DNA of 64,000 bases from Neoconidiobolus thromboides FSU 785 (GCA_025603075.1 MU626303.1:1-64000); one strand, 5' to 3'. Shown: positions 11,647 to 26,748, counted from the stretch's first letter. Made by a program: numbers and translations. The notes: generated from the sequence alone by a model not told the origin.

Positions 11647-12633
11647 ATGGTGAAACTTGGCCCCAATTTTATCCATGATTTTAAAAGCGTAATACAAACC
11701 AATACACGCTCACGACGTATAATGATTAGTATTTTATTACTAACATTATGGTCAGCCATTGTATTACCCGTTATCTTCAAACAATATTATGGCACTTTAA
11801 ACAAGGGGATTATCATACGTTCTGAAGAGGTAGAAGAAAACAATATGTTAGTAGAATTAAGTATAGCTAAAGTAGATACAGCTTTGAGAATTATTGATTT
11901 AAAAGTGAATTTATTCCCAAATGGACCATTATACGCCAATGACAATTCAATAACTAAACAAAACATCACTTGTGATTTTCGATATGGTAAAGTAGAAGCA
12001 ATAAAAGATAAAGTATCTCAACCAACTATTATCAAGATACCTATACTTTCAGGAAATCCAAGAGCGTATCCGTTTGAAAATTTAACTACTATAATACCTA
12101 TTTATTGTCAAGATCAACAAGGTTCTTCAGTTTTGCCAATTATTACCTTTGAACGTACATTGGCTACGTATTATCTTACTACAGAAGCCTTTCTTGCTTC
12201 ACACGTAGTGGAAGCTTCAACAGAATCGATGGGATTATTTCCAGATCCTAGTTCTATTCAATTATTAGTAGAATTAACACAACCAACTGAAAATCAATTA
12301 TTTGTATTCTTAGTGTTTTTTATAATGTGGGGATTAAGCTTTGCAATTTTATTTTTTACATTTGATGTTTTGATACATAAAAGGGAAGTACCTCCACCTC
12401 TTATTGGTGTGTCTTTGGCTTTATTATTCGCTTTACCAGGTATTAGAAATAGTCAACCAGGTGTTCCATTCTTAGGTTGTTTATCCGATTTTATTTCCTT
12501 TTTTTGGTAATTAGTTTTTAGAGATCTTTAATATAATATATTAAGTCATTTAATTAGGTGCCTAAGTTTAGTTTCCTTTTGTACAGTAGCTAACATGTTG
12601 GCTTTTGCACTAAGGTTTAATAAGAAAGTTTAA
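11647..12633 (+). CDS. DUF4436-like membrane protein, paralogue 1 (Pro-loop channel-like)
   Basis: N-terminal TM, beta-rich ectodomain with YPFE, three C-terminal TMs with PPPLI..LFALPGIRNSQPG; intron 12507-12557 splits the Trp codon; exon 2 CLSLVSFCTVANMLAFALRFNKKV. Confidence 0.85.
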
Positions 12634-13090
12634 ATTAGATCTAAATCAAACAATAAACCAATTATATTATACAAATAATGTTTTATTATTACAAGAACAT
12701 ACATTAGAGAAATATAGTTATTTTGTATTTGTTACATTCAATTTAATGAATAGAAACATTAGATATTAAATAAATATTATTTCAGATAATAAGATTTTTT
12801 AGTTTGTTCATTAAAATAAATTTATTTTATTATTCCTAATGTTTCTATTATCTAATACAATTTATGAATTTTAAAAAAAAATCGGGACTTTATTTAATAA
12901 TGTTTAATTTATTAGAATAAAATTAAAATTCTCAAATTTAGTAATTACAACTTTATGCTCCTATAAAAATGAATAAATTAATATACTAAATAGGAACAAT
13001 AATAAATTATCAATTGAAGTCCAAAAAATAGTCCAATTTTAACTTTGAAACAATAATAAGAATTTAAACATTTTTTTACTCTCAATAGAT

Positions 13091-14091
13091 ATGAGTTTGG
13101 AAATAATGAAAGCCCAATTTAAAGATATTTTAGAAAACCCATTACGAAGAAGATTAATTTATACAATAATAGGAATAGCTATTTATTTAATAATTGTATT
13201 ACCCATTGTATTAACATTAGAACCAAAGGAAGTGATTACTACTCAAACTAAAGAAGAGTTTGATAAGATACGCAATAACGATATCATAATAGCAAGGAAT
13301 CGAGTACAAGCCATTGATCCAATTGGAAAAAATATAACTATTTATTCACGTATACTTGCTTTTGGACAATTAGCTAATGATGTTGGTGTATTATCTCAAG
13401 ATTTAACTTGTTCTTTTTATTATGGTACACCTAAACTAATTGCTAATAAAATACCAGAGCCCTTATCTTTTACTGTACCATTAGTAGAAGGAGATATTAA
13501 ATATTATCCATTTGAACAATTCAAAGCATATATACCAATGAATTGTAATAATCAACAGATTACTGGCTTTTCAATGTTATTTGATGATGGAGCACCAGGA
13601 TATTCATTAAATCAAGAAATCAAACATTATTCGGAATTATCTGATGAAGAGAAAACTCTATTTTATGGCAAAGTGAGTGATGCAAATAATGTTATTTGTA
13701 TACTAAAATTTAGTCAATCTGCCACCAACAAATTCTTTTCAATTTTTGTTACTATTATTATGTGGTGTTTGGCAGTTGCTTTAATTATTTGTTCTTATCA
13801 AATAGTTGTATTGAGAAATGAGCCCCCTCCTCCTTTAATTGCTTTAGGTGTTACCTTATTATTTGCATTACCAAAGTTAAGAGATTCTCAACCTGGGGCT
13901 CCTAAGTTTAATGCTATGTCCGATGTGGCTGGATATTATTGGTGAGTGTTCTTTATTGTTAATTTTATTGTTTAGTTTTAAATTAATTATTTGTTTAAAT
14001 TAGGTGTTTATTTTTAATATCTTTATCAATTTCTTTAAATTTCTTTGCATTTGGTTTAAGATGGCGAAAAGCTAAAACTGGTGCAAAATAA
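13091..14091 (+). CDS. DUF4436-like membrane protein, paralogue 2
   Basis: Same architecture, YPFE, LFALPKLRDSQPGAP; intron 13942-14003 at the same TG|G position; exon 2 CLFLISLSISLNFFAFGLRWRKAKTGAK. Confidence 0.85.
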
Positions 14092-14329
14092 TTAATTGTT
14101 ATTAACTTGTTTTTCTTCAAATAAAATTCTATCTAATCTCGATGTTTTTATTGCTTATTTACGAACAACAATGTTGTTTAATTTTATCATATATTATGAT
14201 ACTAACTTAATATAAGAAAAATAATTTATCATTCAAAATAATATGTATAAAAACTCAATTGATACTAAAAAATTATATTTATAATGTTATAATTTTAAAA
14301 AAAAGAAAGCTAAGATCAATTGACACCTT

Positions 14330-15513
14330 TTACGAATCTTTCATTGAAATAACAACGGCAGAAATAAGTTCTAAATAAGGTAGAAATATAGGATGACTTT
14401 CCTTTGAAATGCCTAATAAGCCAAGTACTTTTGAAGTTGGTGGGTATTTAGAAAATTCTGATAATAAACTTTCTGCTTGAGCCATGGCTGATTCTAATTG
14501 ATGTTCATCAAGCCAACCATCTAAAACTTGGGCTGAATAAGCAGCTAATGCTAATAATACCCTTCGAAGTCTCAAAAATGGTGTTTGTTGTGGGTTTCTT
14601 GGATGATGCATAGCAGACAATGTTTGTTCATAAGGTAAAGTAAGGATTGAACGAATACTTGATGCTATATCTCGACGTACTTGTGGGGTGCGTAATGGGT
14701 AGACACTCATTTCAAATATAACAAAACTTCTAGTATCATTTCTTAACACTCCTTTTTCAACTAAGCCTTTTGCAATTCTTTCTCTTACCATTTTTAATTG
14801 ATAACCTAACTTATTAAAATTCCATGTTTCTCCTAAACAAATAACATTTTAAAATCAATGCTTTATCAAATGATATGAATTAAATTAAATATGAAATTTA
14901 ATTTATTAATTTCAAAAATAAACAAAAATTAATTACCGTTTAGATAAGCGATCCAATTTTTTAAATCTAATTGTTCTCTTGAAGATATCATTACTTTTAT
15001 GGCTTCATCTAGTAAAAATTCATCCAAACTTTCACCCTTTGTAATTGAAATTAATCGTTGGCTTGGTAATAAAATAGTTTGTGTTTTATTAACTGCAAAA
15101 GAGACTCTTTTTCTTAATGCTAACTCAGCCATGATACAAGCTCTTAATATATAACTAAGACTATCATTCCAAAATGATAGATGTCCCTAAAAATTGAATT
15201 CATATTAATATTCTAAAATATTTTCATTTCAACTCAAGGAAAATGCCATTTAATTATTTTCTGGTAGAATACATAACTCAATAATCTTTATAATCGACAA
15301 TAACAACAATAAAATAATTACCTCATCTTTTAATCCAAGTAAAAAAAGTTCTTCCATCAAAGTTAAAGCTGGTTTATAAGGGGACAAATTATAGTCTATT
15401 ACTTCTTTTTCTTCTTGTTCCATAGAATCATTCATTTTATTAATTTGTTCTTCGTTATAAGGGTCTTCACTAGTGAGACCAGCATTCTTACGTCTTTTCA
15501 TACCTTCCATCAT
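14330..15513 (-). CDS. VPS74: Golgi phosphoprotein 3 / Vps74 (GPP34) family, multi-exon
   Basis: LTLMEELFLLGLKD, LSFWNDSLSYILRACIMAELALR, LLDEAIK, ETWN...YQLKMVRERIAKGLVEKGVLR; first ATG at 15513 (ORF track start is TTG). Confidence 0.9.
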
Positions 15514-15787
15514 AATCAATTATAACTTTTAGTTTTAAGAAAATATAGCAATCAAAATACGATGAAGATGATAAGTTTTATCTATTTAATTAGCTTAATG
15601 ATATATTTGTTTTGTATTTTTAATTTACTTTTTATTTTGAATTGATAAAAGTTCCTTATCCAATTCAAGTGGATGTTATTAAAATGCATCAATTTCGAAT
15701 TTATGCAAAAATTGATCAAAATATTGAGTTTGGAAACTTAAAAAATTACAATCAATACGTTATACTTTCTATTGTTGATTTTCAATC

Positions 15788-16313
15788 ATGTCAAATAGGT
15801 AAAATTTAAAATTTAAAAGTTAATTAAACTATATTAATAAATAATTAAGGGGAAAAAATCAATATAATAGTGACTATAATGAATATAATATGGGAACCTC
15901 CACTTCAGACTCTTTATTATATGAGTCCCAAAATAATATGAAAATGGATGAGTTATCAAGTAAAGTATCTCAGTTACATAAAGTAAATTTAATCATTCAT
16001 CATTTGAACTATTAATTAAAACCAATCCATTAACTATTAGGTAACATTAGACATTCATGGACTTGTAGAAGAACAAAATCAAGCATTGGATGAATCCCAA
16101 ACTACATTTGATAGTTTTGGAGATAGATTAAAAAACACACAACATCGAGTACGAAATATGTTAACTTCACAAAATAGAAGAGTAATGATGTATGCAATAA
16201 TAATAATATTTTTCCTTTTTATTATCATTTATCATTATTTCAATCGTACTTCAGAAAAAGTAGAAGCATTATCAGAGCCTATCGAAGACTTTTTGCAAGC
16301 ACCTTTTTCTTAA
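15788..16313 (+). CDS. Qc-SNARE, Bet1/Sft1-like
   Basis: Probable exons from ATG 15788; SNARE heptad MDELSSKVSQLHK|VTLDIHGLVEEQNQALDESQTTFDSF with central Q, followed by a hydrophobic C-terminal anchor. Confidence 0.75.
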
Positions 16314-17529
16314 TCTATAGGATAATGATGTAATTTTTTTTAATGCTTAAGAAGCTTATTTATCGCAAATATATGCTTGATTTATTTCAATTGGAAGATT
16401 CAAGTTTAACATTTCTTTTATTAAATAATATATTTTAATATATTTTTTAGCTAAATGATTTTAATTTTATAAATATCAATTGTAATATAGAAATAGGATA
16501 TAGATAGGATTTAACGAGTGTTCATTTATTAAATACAAATTATGGACAAAAAGATTATTTTTGTAACTATTTTATTTAAAATTAGTTTGGGAATTAGTAA
16601 ACTATGCCAAGTAATACTGCTACTACAGCTCTATTGCAACCTAGTTAACCATTCATTTAATAATAAAGTTTTGCTAAAATTGTACTAAAATTGTATTAGA
16701 ATTGTACTAAAATTTAATGATTAGGTTCTAAAAAATCAAATAAGCAAATAACTAGCTCTAAAAACTATAACAAGTTAAGTCAAATAGAGTTGCAGCTGTA
16801 AGCCAACATCTTACATGGAAACCAAGAATGCTTTTTCTTTTGATGAGGTCTTAATGGACTGTAAAAAAAGAGGCTTATACAAAAAATTCTTTTTGTATAA
16901 AAAAGGAAGTCAATCAAAAATTACCAAATCAAAAATAAGTATAATTGTTTTTATATGCCCTAATTCCTAACCTACGATTTAATTTAATAAATATATATAT
17001 GAAAAATGACATGTCTTAAGTTGTTTTGAAGATATACCACCAATTTCTATTATGATTTACAAATCTATACTTTATCAAAAATTTTACTTTCTTCCCTAGT
17101 TTATTAAGACATCAACTTGTTCCTTTTGTGTTTTAAGTATTTTTTATAGAACATGAAATTTGTGAATATCTTACCATCAAATGTCTATTACCAATATTAT
17201 ACACAATCGTAAATATTTAAGTCTGTTTCTATCCAAAATTAACATAATTTCATTATATTACTAGTACTTTATATTGATTTTTATAAATGTATTAATATAT
17301 AAGTATAATAATACATTTAATTTATGTTAAAATATTTCAATTTATTTTTATGAATAAATTAGTATAAGTAAAACCTTATACTTATGCAACATTAATGATT
17401 CCTTAGATATGTTTTATATAATAACAAAATAGATAGCTTGAATTTTTTTTAAAAAGAATTAATATATTTTGAGTTTTTATTTTTATTGTTTTTATATAGC
17501 TTGAAGTTTAAAAAAAATAAATTAGTGAG

Positions 17530-17630
17530 AAATGGAGATATATTTTTATGTTTAAGAATTTTACTAACAATTTTTCCGCTCAAATACTGCTTAAGATGGA
17601 AAAAGTAATAAAGCCAAAACATCCTCAATT
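17530..17630 (+). mobile_element. family A repeat, copy 2
   Basis: Core TTTAAGAATTTTACTAACAATTTTTCCGCTCAAATACTGCTTAAGATGGAAAAAGTAA; degenerate termini. Confidence 0.8.
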
Positions 17631-17716
17631 ATAATTATTCTTTCAATTAAATTATAATTTTAAATTTCGTTAATAACAACTTTTGAGAATTAAAAAATTA
17701 ACCATGAAAAATAAGA

Positions 17717-17815
17717 ATTGGGGATGTATTTTTGTGTTTAAGAATTTTACTAAGATTTTCCACTTAAATAGTGCTTAAAAAATGGAAAAAATGAAGTCAA
17801 AAAACACTCCCATAA
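17717..17815 (+). mobile_element. family A repeat, copy 3
   Basis: TTGGGGATGTATTTTTGTGTTTAAGAATTTTACTAAG...ATGGAAAAAATGAAGTCAAAAAACACTCCCATA. Confidence 0.8.
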
Positions 17816-18080
17816 TTTATTATTAAAAAAGTATAAAATATTATATGTATTACTATTAGCTTAGTCCCAGAATGTTGAACATACAAACTTGAATAAAAAA
17901 ATGACCTTCAACTTCATTCAACTTTATAACCACTTTGCTTATAATATTTAGCTATAATAAAACTTTAAGGATTTAAATAGGGATAATTAATTTAGTTAGT
18001 GGGTAGTATGATATTATTTGAAATGTGTCCTATTTTTTTGCTATAAAATTCAAGCAGTAGGTGTCAGTTAATTCAGCTAA

Positions 18081-18233
18081 AACAGCTTACAGTTAGACAA
18101 CTTTATGTTTCAATTTATAACCAATTTCTTTTGATATGAATTTGAGAGCAATATTTTTTATATACCTTTAAATTTGTATTAAAAACGTAACTCCAAATCA
18201 AAAACAATGAAATATATCTAACTGTAAGTTGTT
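18081..18233. repeat. small inverted-repeat element, possible TA-CAGT MITE
   Basis: AACAGCTTACAGTTAGA (18081-18097) vs reverse complement of 18217-18233 AACAACTTACAGTTAGA, 16/17 identical; a 13-nt match TAACTGTAAGCTG recurs at 33211. Confidence 0.4.
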
Positions 18234-19224
18234 CTATTATTAATTTTAAAAAAAGATTAATATGGTTAGTGATTTATTACGTATACTTACATGATCGAGT
18301 TTAAAACATAAGCCTTTATATTAACCTTAAAAGTAAGCGATTGAAAAGTATTGCACAATGCATATTATTTGTTTACAAAAACTGTGAGTGTGAAATCTTT
18401 GAGATTTGATAATAAAACATTGGTGTTTTATTACCGAGTTAATAGGAATAAGAATAAATATAAAATGCTGTAACGTTGTTTAAGATACTTATTTAATGAA
18501 TGAATATCGAAGCCTTAATGCCAAGGTCAAGGAGGTAAATGAGCAGCCCAGGTAAATAAGTTCAGTATAAAATTTGGAGTATAATATATGAGACACTATG
18601 TTATATTAAAAAAACTTTTTTTTGACTATAACGTTGAATCGATTAACTGCTTTAGTAGGTTCGGGTTCGACTTAGCTTTGAGTTTAATTACTTTTGTTAG
18701 AATATGAGACAATTTAAATTATTGTTACAAACGTAATGTTCAAAGCCATAATGTTATTCATATTTAGAGTATAAATTTATTATACAAAATTGAATAACTA
18801 AATTAAGCTTAAAGCTAATGTAAGAATTTCTTGAATCAAAAATAAAAGAAGCTAATCATTTAGTCTTTGTTCAAAAATAGCTAACTTTAAGTGGTTAAGA
18901 ACTGGTCCTGCAACTTTTAACTATCACCTTATGTACTTTTTTTATTTTAAATTTAAAGATTATCATTGAAAATTTGGCTATAAAAATAAGATTACTATTT
19001 TTAATCATGTGAAACTAATTCAAGCCCCATTTAATTTTTGATAAGCCATATTATAAAATAAAATAGCTTTACATAAGGAATAATTCAAATAATTATATAT
19101 AAATAATACAGCCAACGTTTATCAACTTATTAAATTCGAAATTTAGTTTGTTTTCTTTTTCATCAAATTTCTATTTTTTTAGTATAGCATTAGGATTTAA
19201 TATATAAACAACTCGATATTTGAT

Positions 19225-19863
19225 ATGGAAGATAAAAGAAATAGTAAATGGTACATAACTTTATTAAATAAATTATCAACGAAAGGTGACAATTACGAAA
19301 AAAATAAATTAAATGACATTATAAACAATACAAGAGCGTTAGAATGTTCGATGGGTTTGGATACTACTTGCTATAAACCTAAACTATCTCATAACCCTAA
19401 GCCGATAAACAACGATGCCTGGTGTAAATCGTTTATTAAAGTATCCAATTTAGTAACAAATTGTCAATCTAATCGTATACACCAAAATCCAAAGCTATCC
19501 AAAAATGAAAATGTTATAAAGCGTTCTCAAACTATGAATATAACTAGCAATACAACCTATATGCAAAGTATCCGAAAACTCAGAAATAACCCAAGGAGGC
19601 CGTTACTTCAAGTGGTATTAATCCAACATATGGTACACAAAATACGGGATGATGATAGTGTCAATTTAGATAGAGAAATGGGAATCAATCGATTTTCTTC
19701 CGAGATACCTTGTCATTTGACTGGTGTCAAAAATCGGAAAATTAAAAGTTATCCTACTTTAGTTCAAATCTTTTCTAATGAGAAAGAACTACAAATGAAT
19801 TTACTAAACGTATATACTGAAGATGATGATATCCCTATAGCATTATTAAATAAGAGAAAATAG
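19225..19863 (+). CDS. hypothetical protein (212 aa, intronless)
   Basis: ATG-initiated 212-codon ORF in AT-rich DNA with protein-like motifs LRNNPRRPLLQVVLIQHM and DDDIPIALL; no family recognised. Confidence 0.6.
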   Translation: MEDKRNSKWYITLLNKLSTKGDNYEKNKLNDIINNTRALECSMGLDTTCYKPKLSHNPKPINNDAWCKSFIKVSNLVTNCQSNRIHQNPKLSKNENVIKRSQTMNITSNTTYMQSIRKLRNNPRRPLLQVVLIQHMVHKIRDDDSVNLDREMGINRFSSEIPCHLTGVKNRKIKSYPTLVQIFSNEKELQMNLLNVYTEDDDIPIALLNKRK

Positions 19864-19945
19864 TTTCTATAGAATAAAATTTACTGTTTTGATTTTATGT
19901 TCAATTTATTTATTCATTTAAACTAAAGTATTTAAACTCAAAACT

Positions 19946-20047
19946 ATATGGGAGTGTTTTTTTTAACTTCATTATTTTTTTCATTAAGCACTATTAAGCG
20001 GAAAAATTGTTAGTAAAATTCTTAAACACAAAAATACATCCCCATAT
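19946..20047 (-). mobile_element. family A repeat, copy 4
   Basis: Reverse copy ending ...GTAAAATTCTTAAACACAAAAATACATCCCCATAT, between convergent genes. Confidence 0.85.
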
Positions 20048-20102
20048 TATGTTTTTGTAAATTTTTTATTCAAGCAATTACAATAGTTAAAATACTAACT
20101 CA

Positions 20103-21056
20103 TTATTTAGGTAAATCGGAGACTGGCTTTCTCCATCTTAGAGCATAAGAGAACAAGTTAAACATAATACAGACTGCGATGATACCAATACACCAAAAGA
20201 AAGCAATATAATCGGCAAGACAACCCATAACTGGAGAACCAGCTTGAGAATTTCTAACACCTGGTAAAGCAAAAAGGATAGAAACACCAACAGCTATTAA
20301 AGGGGGAGGTACTTCACGTTTTTGTACAACAAAATCAAAGGTAATGATTCCATATGGGATGGATAGCCCCCACATAACTGCCATAAGGAAAAAGGAAAAA
20401 GCTTGAGTTGAACTAGGTGTATTTAATTTGATTTCAACTGCTACAGCATCTAAGTTGTCATATAAGCCAAGGAACATATCCTTGTTTTCGCCATTTCTAA
20501 TTGAATCTGCTTCTATTTCTGGTTTATGGCTTACTAAACTTTTATCAATTTGGATAACTAATGGAAGAGGTTTTTTCTTAGAATCTAGGCAAATAACAGT
20601 GAAATAGCCTAAATACTGTTCAACTGGGTATTCACGAATAGTTCCATAACTTATTGGGACAGTAAAACTAACGGTATTAATGGGTTGCCCTTTGATAATA
20701 GTTTGCTTTCCATATAACAAATCACAAGTAACGTTTTGATTTGAGTTTTGGAGCTCATCAACATAATCTTCGCCAATCATTTGAAACTTAGCAAGCAAGT
20801 TTATTTTACGGGCTGGGGCTTCTATTGATTGAAATGAGAGAGCCAAATTGACACCACTAAATGAATCTAGATCTTCAAATCCCTCGGATATATAATCTGG
20901 TATACTATTCTTTAATTCTCTTAAATCTGGGTTATGAACCTTCTTAACAACTGGAATGACGATAATGCACCAAATACAGACACCTATAAATGAGAGAAAG
21001 ATTCTCCTAAGTCTTGTTGTAGACATAATCTTTTCATATAAATCTTTAATTGACAT
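20103..21056 (-). CDS. DUF4436-like membrane protein, paralogue 3 (intronless)
   Basis: 317 aa; TRLRRI anchor, YPVE, PPPLIAVGVSILFALPGVRNSQAGSPVMGCLADYIAFFWC. Confidence 0.88.
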   Translation of the reverse strand: MSIKDLYEKIMSTTRLRRIFLSFIGVCIWCIIVIPVVKKVHNPDLRELKNSIPDYISEGFEDLDSFSGVNLALSFQSIEAPARKINLLAKFQMIGEDYVDELQNSNQNVTCDLLYGKQTIIKGQPINTVSFTVPISYGTIREYPVEQYLGYFTVICLDSKKKPLPLVIQIDKSLVSHKPEIEADSIRNGENKDMFLGLYDNLDAVAVEIKLNTPSSTQAFSFFLMAVMWGLSIPYGIITFDFVVQKREVPPPLIAVGVSILFALPGVRNSQAGSPVMGCLADYIAFFWCIGIIAVCIMFNLFSYALRWRKPVSDLPK

Positions 21057-21696
21057 TTTAAATCTTGTATATCCAATAATAATTTTTTTTATTAAGCTTA
21101 GATATTGCTATCTTCTTATTCTGTTTATTTATATGGTTTTAAAATTCCTCATTTCGATGTGTTGTAAAAGAACAAATAGATATTCTAAAAATATTAAAGT
21201 TCCAGCTAAACTGTTCTTTTACTTGATAAAAATAAGTTGATTAAATACTCCCCAGTTTCTGAGAAATAAACAATAAATAATAAACGATTGTTGTGATTAT
21301 GTTATATATTCTACTTAGATTTATATCATATACCTTTTTACTATTTAGAATCAACTTGAATGTTTTAATGATGTTTAAATATAGAAATTACAGGCTTAAA
21401 CTTAGAAGGATATCTATAATTATTAATTATTTTTATTAATCAAAAATTGATTTTTTTATTATAAATCAAAAAATAAATTAAGTTATAAAAACAAAGGTAT
21501 TGAAATAATAGTAGATAAAACTAGAATTTAATTAAGATAAAAGAATAATAATAATTGTACTGATTATATAAAAACTTATTGGAATATTGATTTAATTTCA
21601 ATAAGAAATATTTGTATGTTCATACAATATTTTATAATTTTTTAATATCTACTCTTAACAGTTCTAATAAAGAAATTAGAATCTAAGACAAATAAT

Positions 21697-21799
21697 ATAT
21701 GGGAATGTTTTTTTTGCTTGAGAATTTTACTAGCATTTTTTCCACTTAAATAACGCTTGAAATGGAAAAAGTAATGAAATCAAAAAAACATCTCCATCT
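21697..21799 (+). mobile_element. family A repeat, copy 5
   Basis: ATATGGGAATG...AGAATTTTACTAG...ATGGAAAAAGTAATGAAATCAAAAAAACATCTCCAT. Confidence 0.8.
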
Positions 21800-22329
21800 T
21801 TATTTTCATTTCCCTTTAATTTAAATTCCATTGTTTAGTTAAATAGTAGTTCATATCAATATCGAAAATTCTACCGCAAATAATAGAATTTATGCTTATT
21901 AATACTTCAGTATAATTTGTTTATGCTTCTTTATTATTCTAATAAAACAATAGAATCATAAATAGGAAAACATTTTTAATCAGGTTATATTTTGATTGAA
22001 TTTATTAAAATTAGCATTATGTGGTTGTATAATATAAAATATTCACAAGTTTGTAATAAAGAAAACCATTTAGAAAAAACCATGGAGGTTCCATGTTACT
22101 AAACATTATTTTTATAATATCAAAAGCTTGGTTTTATTTGTTTTTATTGTAAGCAATAATTATTGTCACAAAAAGGTTGAAAGTGTATTTCTACCCATTT
22201 ATAGTCATGATGTTCCATTTAAATTTATTAAAGTTTATCAAAATAGTTCAAGTTATTGAAAAATATAGCAATGAGTTTAATTTCTATAATCTTTATAACT
22301 TACAAGTAAATAGAAATGATTATAACTAC

Positions 22330-22391
22330 TGTTAGCCCGGAAATCCTTTATTATTAACAAAATTCTTAAACATAAAAATATATCTCCATAT
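22330..22391 (-). mobile_element. family A repeat, partial copy 6 abutting copy 7
   Basis: CGGAAAT...AAAATTCTTAAACATAAAAATATATCTCCATAT; shares the terminal ATAT with the next copy. Confidence 0.6.
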
Positions 22392-22489
22392 GCGGCTGTT
22401 TTTTTAGCTTCATTACTTTTTCTCTTATAAGCAGTATTTGAGCGGAAAATTTGTTAGTAAAATTCTTAGATAAAAATACATCCTCATAT
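22388..22489 (-). mobile_element. family A repeat, copy 7
   Basis: ...GCAGTATTTGAGCGGAAAATTTGTTAGTAAAATTCTTAGATAAAAATACATCCTCATAT. Confidence 0.85.
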
Positions 22490-23156
22490 GATGAAATTTA
22501 AAACATGTATATTGAAAGTTTTTTAAATTATAATAAACATTTATGTAGATTATTTAAATTAACAAAATCCTTTTATTACATTAAGGTTATTTGTAATAGA
22601 AATATGTATTCAGATAACCACTTTTTAATAAATTATTTAACTATGTTCATGTTCATGTTCATGTTCTTTGTTTCCCTTTAATAAATTTTAGGATCAATTT
22701 GGTGTTAGTTTATGATAAATCTTATAATTTATTAAAGATAACAAATAAAAGTTCTTCATCCTAACTTTTTGGCTATTAATAAGGATTATTCATATTGATT
22801 ATTGATAATTTGAAAAAATAAAATGTTACAAAGATTTAAGGAGCTTATTTCGTATATAAAATTATGTAAAAAAATACTTCTCTTCAAATTGTATACTGTT
22901 TATGTTTGTATACTTATTAATATAAACATGGTCTGAATTATTGTCACTCCGTCATAATGAATTAAATATAGAAGTGCAATAAGTTTTTAAAGATCCAAGC
23001 CTTTGTAAGATCAGGAGTAGAATAGAAGTATTTGAAAAAAATCCTTCTTTTAATAATTCTTATATGCAAATTGTATAAGAACCATTCATGAACTGAATAA
23101 AATTTAGGGCATTTTCATACATTTTAACTGGTAGAGATCTTACAAAGCATTATAGG

Positions 23157-23259
23157 ATATAGGAATGTATTTTTGTGCTTAAGAATTTTACTAATAATTT
23201 TTCCGCTCAAATACTGCTTAGAAGATGGAAAAAGTAATAAAGCCAAAACATCCCCATAT
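23157..23259 (+). mobile_element. family A repeat, copy 8
   Basis: ATATAGGAATGTATTTTTGTGCTTAAGAATTTTACTAATAATTTTTCCGCTCAAATACTGC...AAAACATCCCCATAT. Confidence 0.85.
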
Positions 23260-23860
23260 AATAATTTCAATGAAATATTTATAGTTTTTATAGCAGCAAT
23301 TTATTTTTTACATGACAAATAAGGTTCTAAACTGGCTATGTTCTATAAATTTTGAATATTTTAAAAATTATGTCTATTTAGTTAAGTACTGTTGTACAAT
23401 TGAATGATTATATAAAAGTACAATATTGCTTTATAAATATAAAGTTTTTTAGAAACTATTATTACATCAAACTGCTTTCTTATTTTGTATTATTGTCAAG
23501 GTTTATTACGTTTTTATTGTTTGTTTGTAGAATATTAAATTTTACATTGAAATTTTTGTTTATTTCAATTAGGACACGTTTTTATAGTATAAATTATACA
23601 TACTTTTGTAGAATCTATTTAAAGTTTATAATGTCTTATGCTTTTAACTAATTCAACGTAATCTTTGTGTTATAAAATCCGTTACTCAAAGCAAATATTA
23701 CAGTAAATTTTGACTATTATATTATAAAAAAGACATTGAATTGTAAATATATTTTGTTTAATCGGGATAAAGTATAAAAACATAAAAGATACCACTCTAT
23801 TTTTTATGAAACAAGAATATTTATTGATAATATGATATGCCTTTAAATGTTTTAAAACTG

Positions 23861-25015
23861 CTATTCTTGTAAATACACTTCCATACCCTCTCCCCATCTT
23901 AATTGCACCTCTGTATCATCAAAATAAATAGCTCCAAAAGAAGATTTAACCCACTCTATAGCAGCATAAATATCTTGGTTCCATTTAGTAATTTTGAATG
24001 TATTTTTATGAGTAATATGGAACTGAAGACGTTCTTCTGCCTTAGGCAAATGGGGTGTTAGCCTAATAGAATTTTCTTCGTCTTCAGGTGCATATAAATA
24101 TTGACCTCCATGTTTAATATAAGTAATTCCATCCCTTGTTTCACATGTAACTTCAAAGTCTACATTACTTAGTACTCCAATAAGTTCATTTTCGAAGATA
24201 TCAATGGCATCATGCTCATGGTAATCATCATCATCGCCATCATCATCATCATTATCTTCATCGTTGGACTTTTCTTCGTTATATATTTTTAATGAATATA
24301 TTTTATCTTCATCTACTTTTTCCCCTGCAAAGTCAATTAAATTAAAGTTTGGTTTTCTCTCAACTTTAGGCCTTCTGTTAGGCAATTCTTTGTCTTCTTG
24401 AATCAATTTGTCGATGTTGCTGATTTCTTCAATTACCATCCAGGTAACTCTGGATTTAAGCTGACTACTATATTTGTAGCTCATTGTTGTATTGTGAGTG
24501 TTAAAACATTGATAATTATCGTTGCCTAGATAAACAACAAAAAAATGGCCTTGGACATTTTTAGATTTCGCTATATCAGCAAATTTTAAAATATCCATAT
24601 CATCATAATACTCAACTACTGTATTATCTTCGGTTCCATTTCGACTTATAAAGTCATTTTCTCTCATGAATAATATGTATGGAAGCTCCCCATTTATTAC
24701 TATGTTATCAGCGATATATAAATTACCGAAGGGATAACTAATTCCATTTTTATTTGTGAATTCATTATAAAAATAATTTAGTCGATCACTATTTCTCATT
24801 ACTAAGTTCCTACAATTATAGTCGCATTTGATCTCTTTATTAAAAACATACATTGAAAAATAATCCTCTCTTAATACGGCAAAAAAATCTTCTTTCCTCT
24901 TTTTGATTTCAGCATCAATGTCTGGTACTTTAATAAACTCACAATTTTTATCAACCATGCATTTATCAATATTGTCAATATCAACTTCAGAATAAATTAC
25001 TACCATCCCAAACAT
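23861..25015 (-). CDS. hypothetical protein (384 aa, intronless, acidic tract)
   Basis: Long ATG-initiated uninterrupted ORF in very AT-rich DNA; DEDNDDDDGDDDD tract; no family recognised. Confidence 0.7.
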   Translation of the reverse strand: MFGMVVIYSEVDIDNIDKCMVDKNCEFIKVPDIDAEIKKRKEDFFAVLREDYFSMYVFNKEIKCDYNCRNLVMRNSDRLNYFYNEFTNKNGISYPFGNLYIADNIVINGELPYILFMRENDFISRNGTEDNTVVEYYDDMDILKFADIAKSKNVQGHFFVVYLGNDNYQCFNTHNTTMSYKYSSQLKSRVTWMVIEEISNIDKLIQEDKELPNRRPKVERKPNFNLIDFAGEKVDEDKIYSLKIYNEEKSNDEDNDDDDGDDDDYHEHDAIDIFENELIGVLSNVDFEVTCETRDGITYIKHGGQYLYAPEDEENSIRLTPHLPKAEERLQFHITHKNTFKITKWNQDIYAAIEWVKSSFGAIYFDDTEVQLRWGEGMEVYLQE

Positions 25016-25809
25016 TTCAATTTATTATAATTTAAAATGAAATCAAAGTAATCACTTGAGTTTATATAGTGATCAAAAATAATGATATCATTTTTGGTAA
25101 ATTTAATTTGTTATTTAATTTTGATATTTACCATTTAAATCAAGATAATTTAACAATATTATAATCAAATTCATTTTTATCACATATCTTCTACAAGCTT
25201 TATTGTTTTTAAAAAATAATATTCCTAATTCGGTCTGATTTACTCATTTAAAATACAAATTAGACCAATGATCGTTTTTATAATATAAATCTATTAACAT
25301 AAATTCTGTTTTTAAATAGTTTTACAAATAAAAAGCTTTTTTTAAACTGCAAAATAATTTAGTCACATCTCTACTTAATTGAATATTCTTTTAAATTATT
25401 AAATTATTTTATAGAATAGCTATCAAAATAATATAATTATATTTTTAGTTAACCAATTTATGAAAAAATCAAATTTATATATATATAATTCGATACTTTA
25501 TATTTTTCAGTATATAAAATTTTTAGAGTAATATTTATAATGTTTTTAATTAAATGACTTTTAAAGTTATAAATTGATGGTTGAGTAATAGCATTTAGTA
25601 TGTTTTAATATAATCTTATCAAATAAAATCTAAACCTGATATGAGGATAATAAAATAGATTATTGGAGATAAAAGGCGTAGTTTATAAAATAGTCCAAAA
25701 TAGCTTATTTTAATGATTTTGAATATTGTAACTAATTTATATGTTCAGTTATTTAATTGAAAAAAGCTCAATGTATTACTATCCTGTATGTATATTTAAT
25801 TAAATCACT

Positions 25810-26748
25810 TTATTTGAGTTGAACGGGTTTTCTCCATCTTAATGCAAATGCAAAGATATTCATCATTGAACAAATAGCAATGATAGCCATACACCAGAAA
25901 AAGGCAGCAATATCAGCTAAACATCCTATAATAGGTATACCAGGTTGAGAGTTTCTTAAAGCAGGTAATGCAAATAACATAGATATTCCAACAGCCAAAA
26001 GAGGTGGCGGAATATCCCTACGTGAAATTATAATATCATAAGTAAATACAAACAATGCAATAGATAACCCCCACATTACGATCATTACAAAAATTGAAAA
26101 AATCTTGGATTTAAGAGGTTGAGTTAGTTGAATAAAAACCCCCAGAGCTTCTGAACTTGTATAGGAGCCTTTGAATAATGGTATCAGTTCTTCAAGATCT
26201 TTAATAGGGCTTGAGCGAACAGCTGGAGAATAGGATAATAAATCTCTATCAGTTGTTATTGCAATTGGAATAATTGTTTTGTTAGTATCTTCGCAAGTAG
26301 CAGAAAAATAACTGGTAAACACTTCAAAAGGATAATCATCCACGTTACCATCAATGATAGGCACGGTAAAAGTAATCGGATCTGGAAGCTTGCCCTTAAC
26401 AAGGGCTGATTTAGCGTAAAGTAAATTACAAGTTATGTTTTCGTTTGGTACACCAAATTCATTTGAATATCCTCCAGATAAAAAAATATGAGAATATAAA
26501 TTAATTTTACGGGCAGCTGAATCTACCGATTGGAAATTAAGATGAAAATTAACCCCTTCAAAAGTTTCCTCAGTTTCTCCAGCTGGTATGTAAGATCCAT
26601 TGTCCCCAGATAAATTATTATCCTTGGTTAAGATCACGGGAAGAACGATTATGCACCATAAAGCTATCCCTATTATAAAGCATACAATTCTTCTAATCCG
26701 AGTATTTGAAGAGATTCTTTCATAATTATCTTTTATAAATTGAACCAT
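25810..26748 (-). CDS. DUF4436-like membrane protein, paralogue 4 (intronless)
   Basis: First ATG at 26748 (track start 26763 is TTG); TRIRRI anchor, YPFE, PPPLLAVGISMLFALPALRNSQPGIPIIGCLADIAAFFWC. Confidence 0.88.
   Translation of the reverse strand: MVQFIKDNYERISSNTRIRRIVCFIIGIALWCIIVLPVILTKDNNLSGDNGSYIPAGETEETFEGVNFHLNFQSVDSAARKINLYSHIFLSGGYSNEFGVPNENITCNLLYAKSALVKGKLPDPITFTVPIIDGNVDDYPFEVFTSYFSATCEDTNKTIIPIAITTDRDLLSYSPAVRSSPIKDLEELIPLFKGSYTSSEALGVFIQLTQPLKSKIFSIFVMIVMWGLSIALFVFTYDIIISRRDIPPPLLAVGISMLFALPALRNSQPGIPIIGCLADIAAFFWCMAIIAICSMMNIFAFALRWRKPVQLK

Follow-up and report, generated by a model that had tools for sequence, protein, structure and literature searches.

What are the proteins encoded by four paralogous genes of the fungus Neoconidiobolus thromboides FSU 785, and why does each of them begin with a membrane helix? 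The genes lie between positions 11647 and 26748 of the stretch of DNA studied here (GCA_025603075.1 MU626303.1:1-64000, 64,000 nucleotides (nt), hereafter the window). To our knowledge, all described members of the pentameric ligand-gated channel superfamily share the order ectodomain-M1-M2-M3-M4, where M1 to M4 are the membrane helices. An initial annotation of the window had suggested that the four proteins depart from this order by a circular permutation, with M4 and the cleavable signal peptide replaced by one N-terminal signal-anchor helix. The analysis reported here leads us to favour, with moderate confidence, a reading in which the window proteins are divergent channel-fold subunits whose uncleaved N-terminal helix stands in for M4.

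All four paralogues match the Pfam family PF14494 (DUF4436), with 54-77 bits for a gathering score of 23.2 bits, and the same family was recognized in all 129 aligned relatives. Among 1.8 billion representatives, a profile search yielded 1960 relatives, most of them of about 300 amino acids (aa) with a match starting at residue 5-15, and a second, word-indexed search for more relatives gave 32 proteins. The family is spread over fungi and bacteria, many relatives being bacterial, and the nearest relatives of the window proteins are found in Neoconidiobolus, Entomophthora, Dimargaris and Dispira. DUF4436 receives passing mention in one paper of the literature searched, where no paper linking it to pentameric ligand-gated channels was found. 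The sole hint of such a link that we encountered is the name given automatically by UniProt to a close relative in the AlphaFold DB, 'Neurotransmitter-gated ion-channel ligand-binding domain-containing protein'.

The fold was studied with a single-chain AlphaFold2 model of paralogue 4 (protein P0001), built on the 129-sequence alignment, which reached a predicted local distance difference test (pLDDT) of 93.7 and a predicted template-modelling score (pTM) of 0.84. The model consists of two helices (residues 2-14 and 16-43), ten strands between residues 65 and 209 and three further helices (212-242, 248-266 and 277-303), with nothing after. Hydropathy across the family agrees with this layout, one N-terminal helix being followed by three helices after the ectodomain, which spans about 170 residues in all four paralogues. 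The claim of the initial annotation that only three membrane helices follow the ectodomain was thus borne out by the model, by hydropathy and by introns confirmed with RNA.

Comparison of the model with the PDB using Foldseek produced at least 500 matches, and the top 50 were all pentameric ligand-gated channels (E value 3e-7, probability 1.00, template-modelling (TM) scores 0.30-0.44). Alignment of the native model to solved channels with VIA-align gave Z scores of 10.0-10.6 over about 205-220 residues. Residues 63-308 of the model corresponded to residues 37-311 of the GABA-A receptor beta3 subunit, in an alignment spanning strand 1 to the end of M3 with the ectodomain, M1, M2 and M3 in canonical order. 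When 48,161 chains were searched without bias by VIA-align, ligand-gated channels, including GLIC, ELIC, sTeLIC and DeCLIC, filled all of the top 20 ranks (Z 8.7-10.2, about 210 residues aligned); the next-ranked chains were three-helix bundles matching the membrane part alone, and pentameric ligand-gated channels were the only chains to match the model over its full length, from ectodomain through M3. Neighbours found in the ESM Atlas and in the AlphaFold DB are consistent with a channel-like fold. Other AlphaFold DB neighbours carry the automatic names 'TRP C-terminal domain' and 'GPCR family 3 profile'. A claudin-like layout and other arrangements of four helices were also considered, and were rejected because no such fold appeared in the unbiased search. 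These models support the view that the window proteins carry a pentameric ligand-gated channel fold.

The superfamily has few conserved residues, listed by Jaiteh et al. as an [F/Y]PxD motif in the beta6-beta7 loop, an arginine ahead of M1, a proline in M1 and a proline in the M2-M3 loop (PMC4795631, Table 1). Residue frequencies in 167 aligned DUF4436 sequences (P0001 numbering) revealed counterparts of three of them. The loop of the model corresponding to the tip of the Pro-loop (or Cys-loop) reads Y139 (92%; F 8%), P140 (99%), F (82%) and D142 (89%; E 10%) in the family, and YPFE or YPVE in the window paralogues. An arginine, R210, stands two residues ahead of the M1-like helix in 96% of the sequences, as the counterpart of the superfamily arginine whose partner is the loop aspartate. 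The M2-like helix ends in R265, the only invariant residue of the family, and the M2-M3 loop holds P269 (98%) and P272 (99%), paralogue 3 having A at position 269 and keeping P272. The spacing between these residues is also close to that of GLIC, with 70 residues from P140 to R210 (72 in GLIC) and 59 from R210 to P269 (55 in GLIC), and at the motifs the numbering of the model is shifted from that of beta3 by -4, -6 and -4, in agreement with the shift of -2 at the end of the structural alignment. In our reading, DUF4436 forms a branch that has diverged within the pentameric ligand-gated (Pro-loop) channel fold, strict membership of the superfamily being a further step.

Two further features of the window proteins were noted in passing. 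A pair of cysteines at P0001 residues 107 and 152 (about 26293-26430, minus strand), 44 residues apart, straddles the Y-P-F-E loop. All four paralogues have this pair, whereas the other fungal relatives of the alignment lack it, and it is therefore specific to the clade of the window proteins. The codon occupying the pre-M1 arginine site of paralogue 4, which does not encode arginine, is at 26119-26121 (minus strand), with equivalent codons in the other three paralogues.

The N-terminal helix was then characterized in the family. It is present in 107 of the 127 relatives that could be evaluated, the other 20 being mostly fragments, and a hydrophobic segment after M3 was found in none of the 127. 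Its uncharged run has a median length of 23 residues (10th-90th percentile 19-26.5), whereas the core of a typical signal peptide measures 7-15 residues. The flank ahead of it is basic, the tail measuring about 12 residues, and the cytosolic stretch of 12-24 residues found there is itself helical in the model. The membrane helix is directly followed by a conserved aromatic residue (Y/F, 75%), then an acidic one (E/D, 79%). The tether linking it to the ectodomain is of about 20 residues and of conserved length (column occupancy 0.80-0.97). In the four paralogues no small-x-small cleavage site follows the helix. By its sequence, the N-terminal helix looks like an uncleaved anchor. The motifs described for it by the initial annotation were found exactly as claimed, TRSRRI, PLRRRL, TRLRRI and TRIRRI preceding a hydrophobic stretch that ends in (W/Y)xxIV(L/I)P(V/I). 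The suggestion that this helix runs from the cytosol to the outside, in the direction of M4, likewise gains support from the basic flank, and an extracellular ectodomain would agree with the NxT sites and the cysteine pair that this domain carries in the window proteins. The predicted orientation therefore fits that of M4.

Sequential aligners leave the helix of the native model outside the channel alignments, and its possible place at the M4 site was therefore tested indirectly, with residues 1-343 of P0016. This slice of a naturally occurring tandem fusion has the helix after M3, as in the canonical order. P0016 (315-2523 of its locus, L001) and P0026 each contain two DUF4436 units per chain. 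In P0016, a first ectodomain-M1-M2-M3 unit is followed by a 64-residue linker, then by the N-terminal helix and the rest of the second copy. Because the assembly is an intron-bearing fungal one and the first unit has no N-terminal helix, P0016 probably represents two tandem genes that the gene caller joined into one. The slice was modelled on an alignment of 143 homologous rows from ectodomain to M3 and none over the helix, N-terminal helix rows being left out because MAFFT puts them on M1. The AlphaFold2 model had a pLDDT of 85.9, with 68-79 in the last helix (308-342). VIA-align alignments now extended from residue 27 to residue 342 or 343 of the model and reached the last M4 residues of the channels (beta3 447, rho1 479, nAChR 469 and RDL 460). 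The aligned length rose from 205-220 residues in the native model to 239-278 in the slice, the Z score from 10.0-10.6 to 11.3-11.9, and the Foldseek E value improved from 3e-7 to 3e-9. The helix, free on a long linker, was yet aligned to the end of M4, and was therefore placed in the M1/M3 groove in the direction of M4. These models make it plausible that the N-terminal helix functionally replaces M4.

Coordinates of all features are collected in Table 1. The window has 25% G+C and few open reading frames. Paralogues 3 and 4, on the minus strand, are each encoded by one uninterrupted reading frame. In paralogues 1 and 2, on the plus strand and 457 nt apart, the first reading frame halts directly past a conserved FFW, and the last helix lies beyond a short GT..AG intron. 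Both joints are present in contigs from four RNA runs. The contigs begin 12 and 18 nt upstream of the ATG of paralogues 1 and 2 and continue past the stop codon; the two genes are therefore expressed and spliced as predicted, and the N-terminal helix is present in their mRNA. The chains end 8-12 residues past M3, and the C-termini of paralogues 1 to 4 read ...LRFNKKV, ...LRWRKAKTGAK, ...LRWRKPVSDLPK and ...LRWRKPVQLK; the basic tails that the initial annotation had noted near the C-terminus, LRWRK in three proteins and LRFNKK in paralogue 1, were all recovered. RNA runs X3 and X4 (organism B) contained a second joint at 12508-12565, skipping 56 nt and with five other letters between, together with synonymous-looking differences along paralogue 1; this joint most likely corresponds to the intron region of another strain or allele. 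A reading frame of 384 aa with an acidic run is located between paralogues 3 and 4 (23861-25015, minus strand).

Table 1. Genes, introns and predicted structural elements of the four DUF4436 paralogues of the window (positions counted from its first nucleotide; ORF, open reading frame; CDS, coding sequence).
Feature	Position	Strand	Basis and remarks
Paralogue 1 CDS, 311 aa	11647..12633, exons 11647-12506 + 12558-12633	+	ORF; sequence-deduced splice; RNA joint skipping 51 nt; Pfam DUF4436 E 5.7e-19
N-terminal helix core, paralogue 1 residues 25-44, after TRSRR	11719..11778	+	20-residue uncharged run
Paralogue 1 intron, 51 nt, GT..AG, within codon of conserved FFW Trp	12507..12557	+	Sequence and RNA
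Paralogue 2 CDS, 312 aa	13091..14091, exons 13091-13941 + 14004-14091	+	ORF; RNA joint skipping 62 nt; Pfam DUF4436 E 1.9e-14
N-terminal helix core, paralogue 2 residues 22-43, after PLRRR	13154..13219	+	22-residue uncharged run
Paralogue 2 intron, 62 nt, GT..AG, codon position as in paralogue 1	13942..14003	+	Sequence and RNA
Paralogue 3 CDS, 317 aa, intronless	20103..21056	-	ORF; Pfam DUF4436 E 6.6e-18
N-terminal helix core, paralogue 3 residues 19-37, after TRLRR	20946..21002	-	19-residue uncharged run
Paralogue 4 CDS, 312 aa from ATG (P0001, the modelled protein)	25810..26748	-	ORF; Pfam DUF4436 E 1.8e-21; AlphaFold2 pLDDT 93.7
M3-like helix, paralogue 4 residues 277-303	25840..25920	-	Model and channel alignment; chain end nine residues on
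M2-like helix, paralogue 4 residues 248-266	25951..26007	-	Model; ends in R265, then conserved QPGxPxxG loop
M1-like helix, paralogue 4 residues 212-242	26023..26115	-	Model; aligned with M1 of solved channels
Y-P-F-E loop, paralogue 4 residues 139-142	26323..26334	-	Between strands 125-133 and 143-153; counterpart of Pro-loop (Cys-loop) tip
N-terminal helix core, paralogue 4 residues 21-41, after TRIRR; proposed M4 stand-in	26626..26688	-	21-residue uncharged run; model helix 16-43, pLDDT 84-93

In the arrangement that we favour, each subunit would start with a short basic cytosolic tail, followed by an uncleaved membrane helix running from the cytosol to the outside, by the tether and by a beta-sandwich ectodomain whose Y-P-F-D/E loop would face the membrane. 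The equivalents of M1, M2 and M3 would come next and end in the cytosol, with neither M4 nor an M3-M4 loop. The N-terminal helix would dock in the outer M1/M3 groove, where M4 is found in ordinary channels, and the order of the resulting four-member helix bundle would be circularly permuted. The most conserved residues of the family (Pro-loop, pre-M1 arginine, M2 end and M2-M3 loop) are those that couple the ectodomain to the pore in known channels and, by this analogy, a gated oligomeric channel or receptor would be the likely function. That fungi and bacteria possess, in their DUF4436 proteins, genuine pentameric gated ion channels, which form an unrecognised branch of the neurotransmitter receptors with the fourth helix supplied from the N-terminus, is a tentative proposal to which we give somewhat less than an even chance.

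Several observations weigh against this interpretation. Regarding the fold, none of the 129 members matched the channel models PF02931 and PF02932 in HMMER even at E values up to 10, and the family profile found no match among PDB chains. Global TM-scores to solved channels remain at 0.30-0.48 with a root-mean-square deviation (rmsd) of 5-6 A. The proline kink of M1, present in 77% of channels, is missing, since no conserved proline was found in helix 212-242, where the family shows M225 (70%) and W226 (91%) at the expected place. In the window proteins themselves, the pre-M1 arginine, present in 94% of true channels, is replaced by Q, Q, T and Q in paralogues 1 to 4. The Q or T is always accompanied by a loop E in place of D (seven sequences of one clade) and loop D is always paired with the arginine (148/148); from the sequences, this may be a compensated change, within a single clade, at a predicted salt bridge. 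Regarding the helix, its placement at the M4 site was seen only in an artificial slice of a probably merged gene model, with an rmsd of about 6 A. The slice helix had no alignment depth, and AlphaFold2, which knows channel structures, may default to an M4-like placement.

Covariation bears on both sides of the question. Mean-field direct-coupling analysis (152 sequences, effective number 133) was too noisy and failed its own positive controls, including M1-M2. Raw mutual information with a reduced alphabet yielded pairs at consistent depth that link the N-terminal helix to the outer half of M3 (35-287 and 39-280) and to the cytosolic end of M1 (20-238), as well as the pair 45-213. All of these behaved as clade markers, and 35-287, 39-280 and 20-238 failed a phylogenetic independent-pairs test on the ectodomain tree, which was itself powerless (p about 1). 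Within-clade permutation disclosed a weak covariation between the N-terminal helix and M1, strongest at matching membrane depth and with few pairs involving M2, which speaks for the interpretation; a depth-matched signal with M3 was not seen. This pattern is compatible with the M4-site idea and too weak to decide. In half of the family, mostly bacterial, a glutamate is found inside the M3-like helix (P0001 position 287), and an aromatic residue at position 35 of the N-terminal helix occurs only with E or Q at 287 (60 sequences, as opposed to 0 with M, I or L). The 35-287 pairing could reflect an intramembrane hydrogen-bonded contact or merely mark a clade.

The origin of the layout was considered next. 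The most economical route would be that the signal peptide was kept as an anchor and M4 was lost; duplication of tandem copies, their fusion and trimming would be another possible one. According to this second view, the N-terminal helix would be the homologue of M4 itself, moved by in-frame fusion of tandem channel genes with trimming of both ends. Such a fusion would leave exactly the order helix-ectodomain-M1-M2-M3, and the topology fits because M4 ends outside, where the next ectodomain begins. The genes are also often in tandem, as are paralogues 1 and 2, and P0016 and P0026 are tandem fusions, although P0016, as said above, looks like a merged gene model. The initial annotation had further seen in the start of the helix a likeness to M4 of GLIC, quoting the string ITRASRIAFP, which is correct (it lies within GLIC residues 283-317) and can be set beside NTRIRRIVCF of paralogue 4 (ITRASRIAF in GLIC). 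However, the TR..RI likeness is confined to this fungal subfamily, and likenesses of this sort are common at the cytosolic start of helices. In the family as a whole the residues ahead of the helix are merely rich in K, S and R, the threonine is not conserved and R19 occurs in only 48%. The likeness therefore does not show that M4 itself moved, and on these sequences it is probably due to chance. In addition, residues 1-48 found no match in the PDB by phmmer, M4 is too variable among channels for any numbering (PMC4795631), so that homology cannot be shown, and keeping a signal peptide requires no gene rearrangement. We regard a true genetic permutation as unlikely, while leaving it some weight, and the layout is at least equally well explained by a signal peptide kept as an anchor together with loss of M4. 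As regards the circular permutation put forward at the outset, the absence of a C-terminal M4 and of an M3-M4 loop and the anchor-type length of the N-terminal helix thus stand, the relocation of M4 itself being unproven.

Another possibility is that the helix serves only as a bilayer anchor or targeting signal, away from the M4 site, the functional bundle having three helices per subunit. Its conservation is the lowest of the four helices (1.45 bits per column, the others having 2.05-2.50) and shows no helical periodicity (p 0.66) and no conserved face; the lack of detected covariation with M3 and the artificial origin of the M4-site placement point in the same direction. Low conservation is nevertheless also a feature of M4, the least conserved helix of true channels (PMC4795631). 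The native model gives the helix a pLDDT of 84-93 within a chain of pTM 0.84, the aromatic and acidic residues at its outer end are conserved, as is the tether length, and the slice helix, free on its 64-residue linker, went to the M1/M3 groove. A pure anchor is thus rather improbable in our opinion.

It might also be argued that DUF4436 is unrelated to ligand-gated channels, its beta-sandwich and three-helix bundle having arisen independently, in which case the term M4 would be meaningless. No sequence method provided a link, TM-scores stayed below 0.5, a Z score of about 10 exceeds the background of 7-8 stated for the tool only moderately, and the AlphaFold DB neighbours include DUF2207 and unnamed proteins. 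Against this, channels are the only ones among the 48,161 chains to match both domains, and in the same order; three of the few conserved residues of the superfamily recur with matching spacing and at matching structural elements, and a close relative was automatically named as a ligand-binding protein of neurotransmitter-gated channels. An independent origin is therefore very unlikely. Least credible of all is a cleavable signal peptide, whose removal would leave a channel-like subunit of three helices with its N-terminus free outside the cell, for although canonical channels do carry cleaved signal peptides at this end, the uncharged run is too long, 12-24 cytosolic residues forming their own helix precede it and the four paralogues lack a small-x-small site after it.

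The channel-fold reading with an N-terminal stand-in for M4 can be compared with known systems. DUF4436 proteins resemble the prokaryotic channels GLIC, ELIC and sTeLIC in their size of about 310 aa, in having no flanking Cys-loop pair across the family, and in their beta-sandwich, Y-P-F-D loop, pre-M1 arginine and M2-M3 proline at near-equal spacing; the M1-M3 order is that of GLIC, residues 63-308 of the model being aligned with GLIC 17-284. Unlike these channels, they have no C-terminal M4, no M1 proline and no match to the Pfam channel models, they carry a probably uncleaved N-terminal membrane helix where the prokaryotic channels have a signal peptide, and their ectodomain is about 30 residues shorter ahead of the Pro-loop. 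The Cys-loop receptors (GABA-A, glycine, nicotinic, 5-HT3 and ZAC) are the closest in structure, with Z up to 10.6, and share the arginine near the outer end of M2 and a conserved interface between ectodomain and membrane. They differ by their long M3-M4 cytoplasmic loop, M4 and cleaved signal peptide, and the cysteines 44 residues apart in the window proteins are separated by 13 in these receptors. Bacterial DUF2207 membrane proteins also have a predicted N-terminal helix, a beta-rich outer domain and further helices. A DUF2207 neighbour in the AlphaFold DB matched residues 15-253 of the model with a TM-score of 0.53, and six DUF4436 members weakly match DUF2207_C, so that the two families may be related; in contrast, DUF2207 has neither the Y-P-F-D nor the LFALPxLRN signature, and only part of the model is matched.

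Pentameric ligand-gated channels have been reported to be absent from fungi (PMC4795631). The present study adds the architecture of DUF4436 across the family, the anchor-type length of its N-terminal helix and a tandem-slice test of M4 placement. If the reading proposed here is true, the role of M4 would be set by position and not by chain connectivity, as shown by a large natural family in which the coupling interface is retained, and there would be a working channel whose helices are permuted and whose intracellular loop is absent. Such proteins would offer a minimal natural system, devoid of the M3-M4 loop, in which to study how the outer helix senses lipids and contributes to assembly. 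They would also indicate that fungi, among them insect-pathogen relatives, and soil bacteria have receptor-like channels still to be explored.

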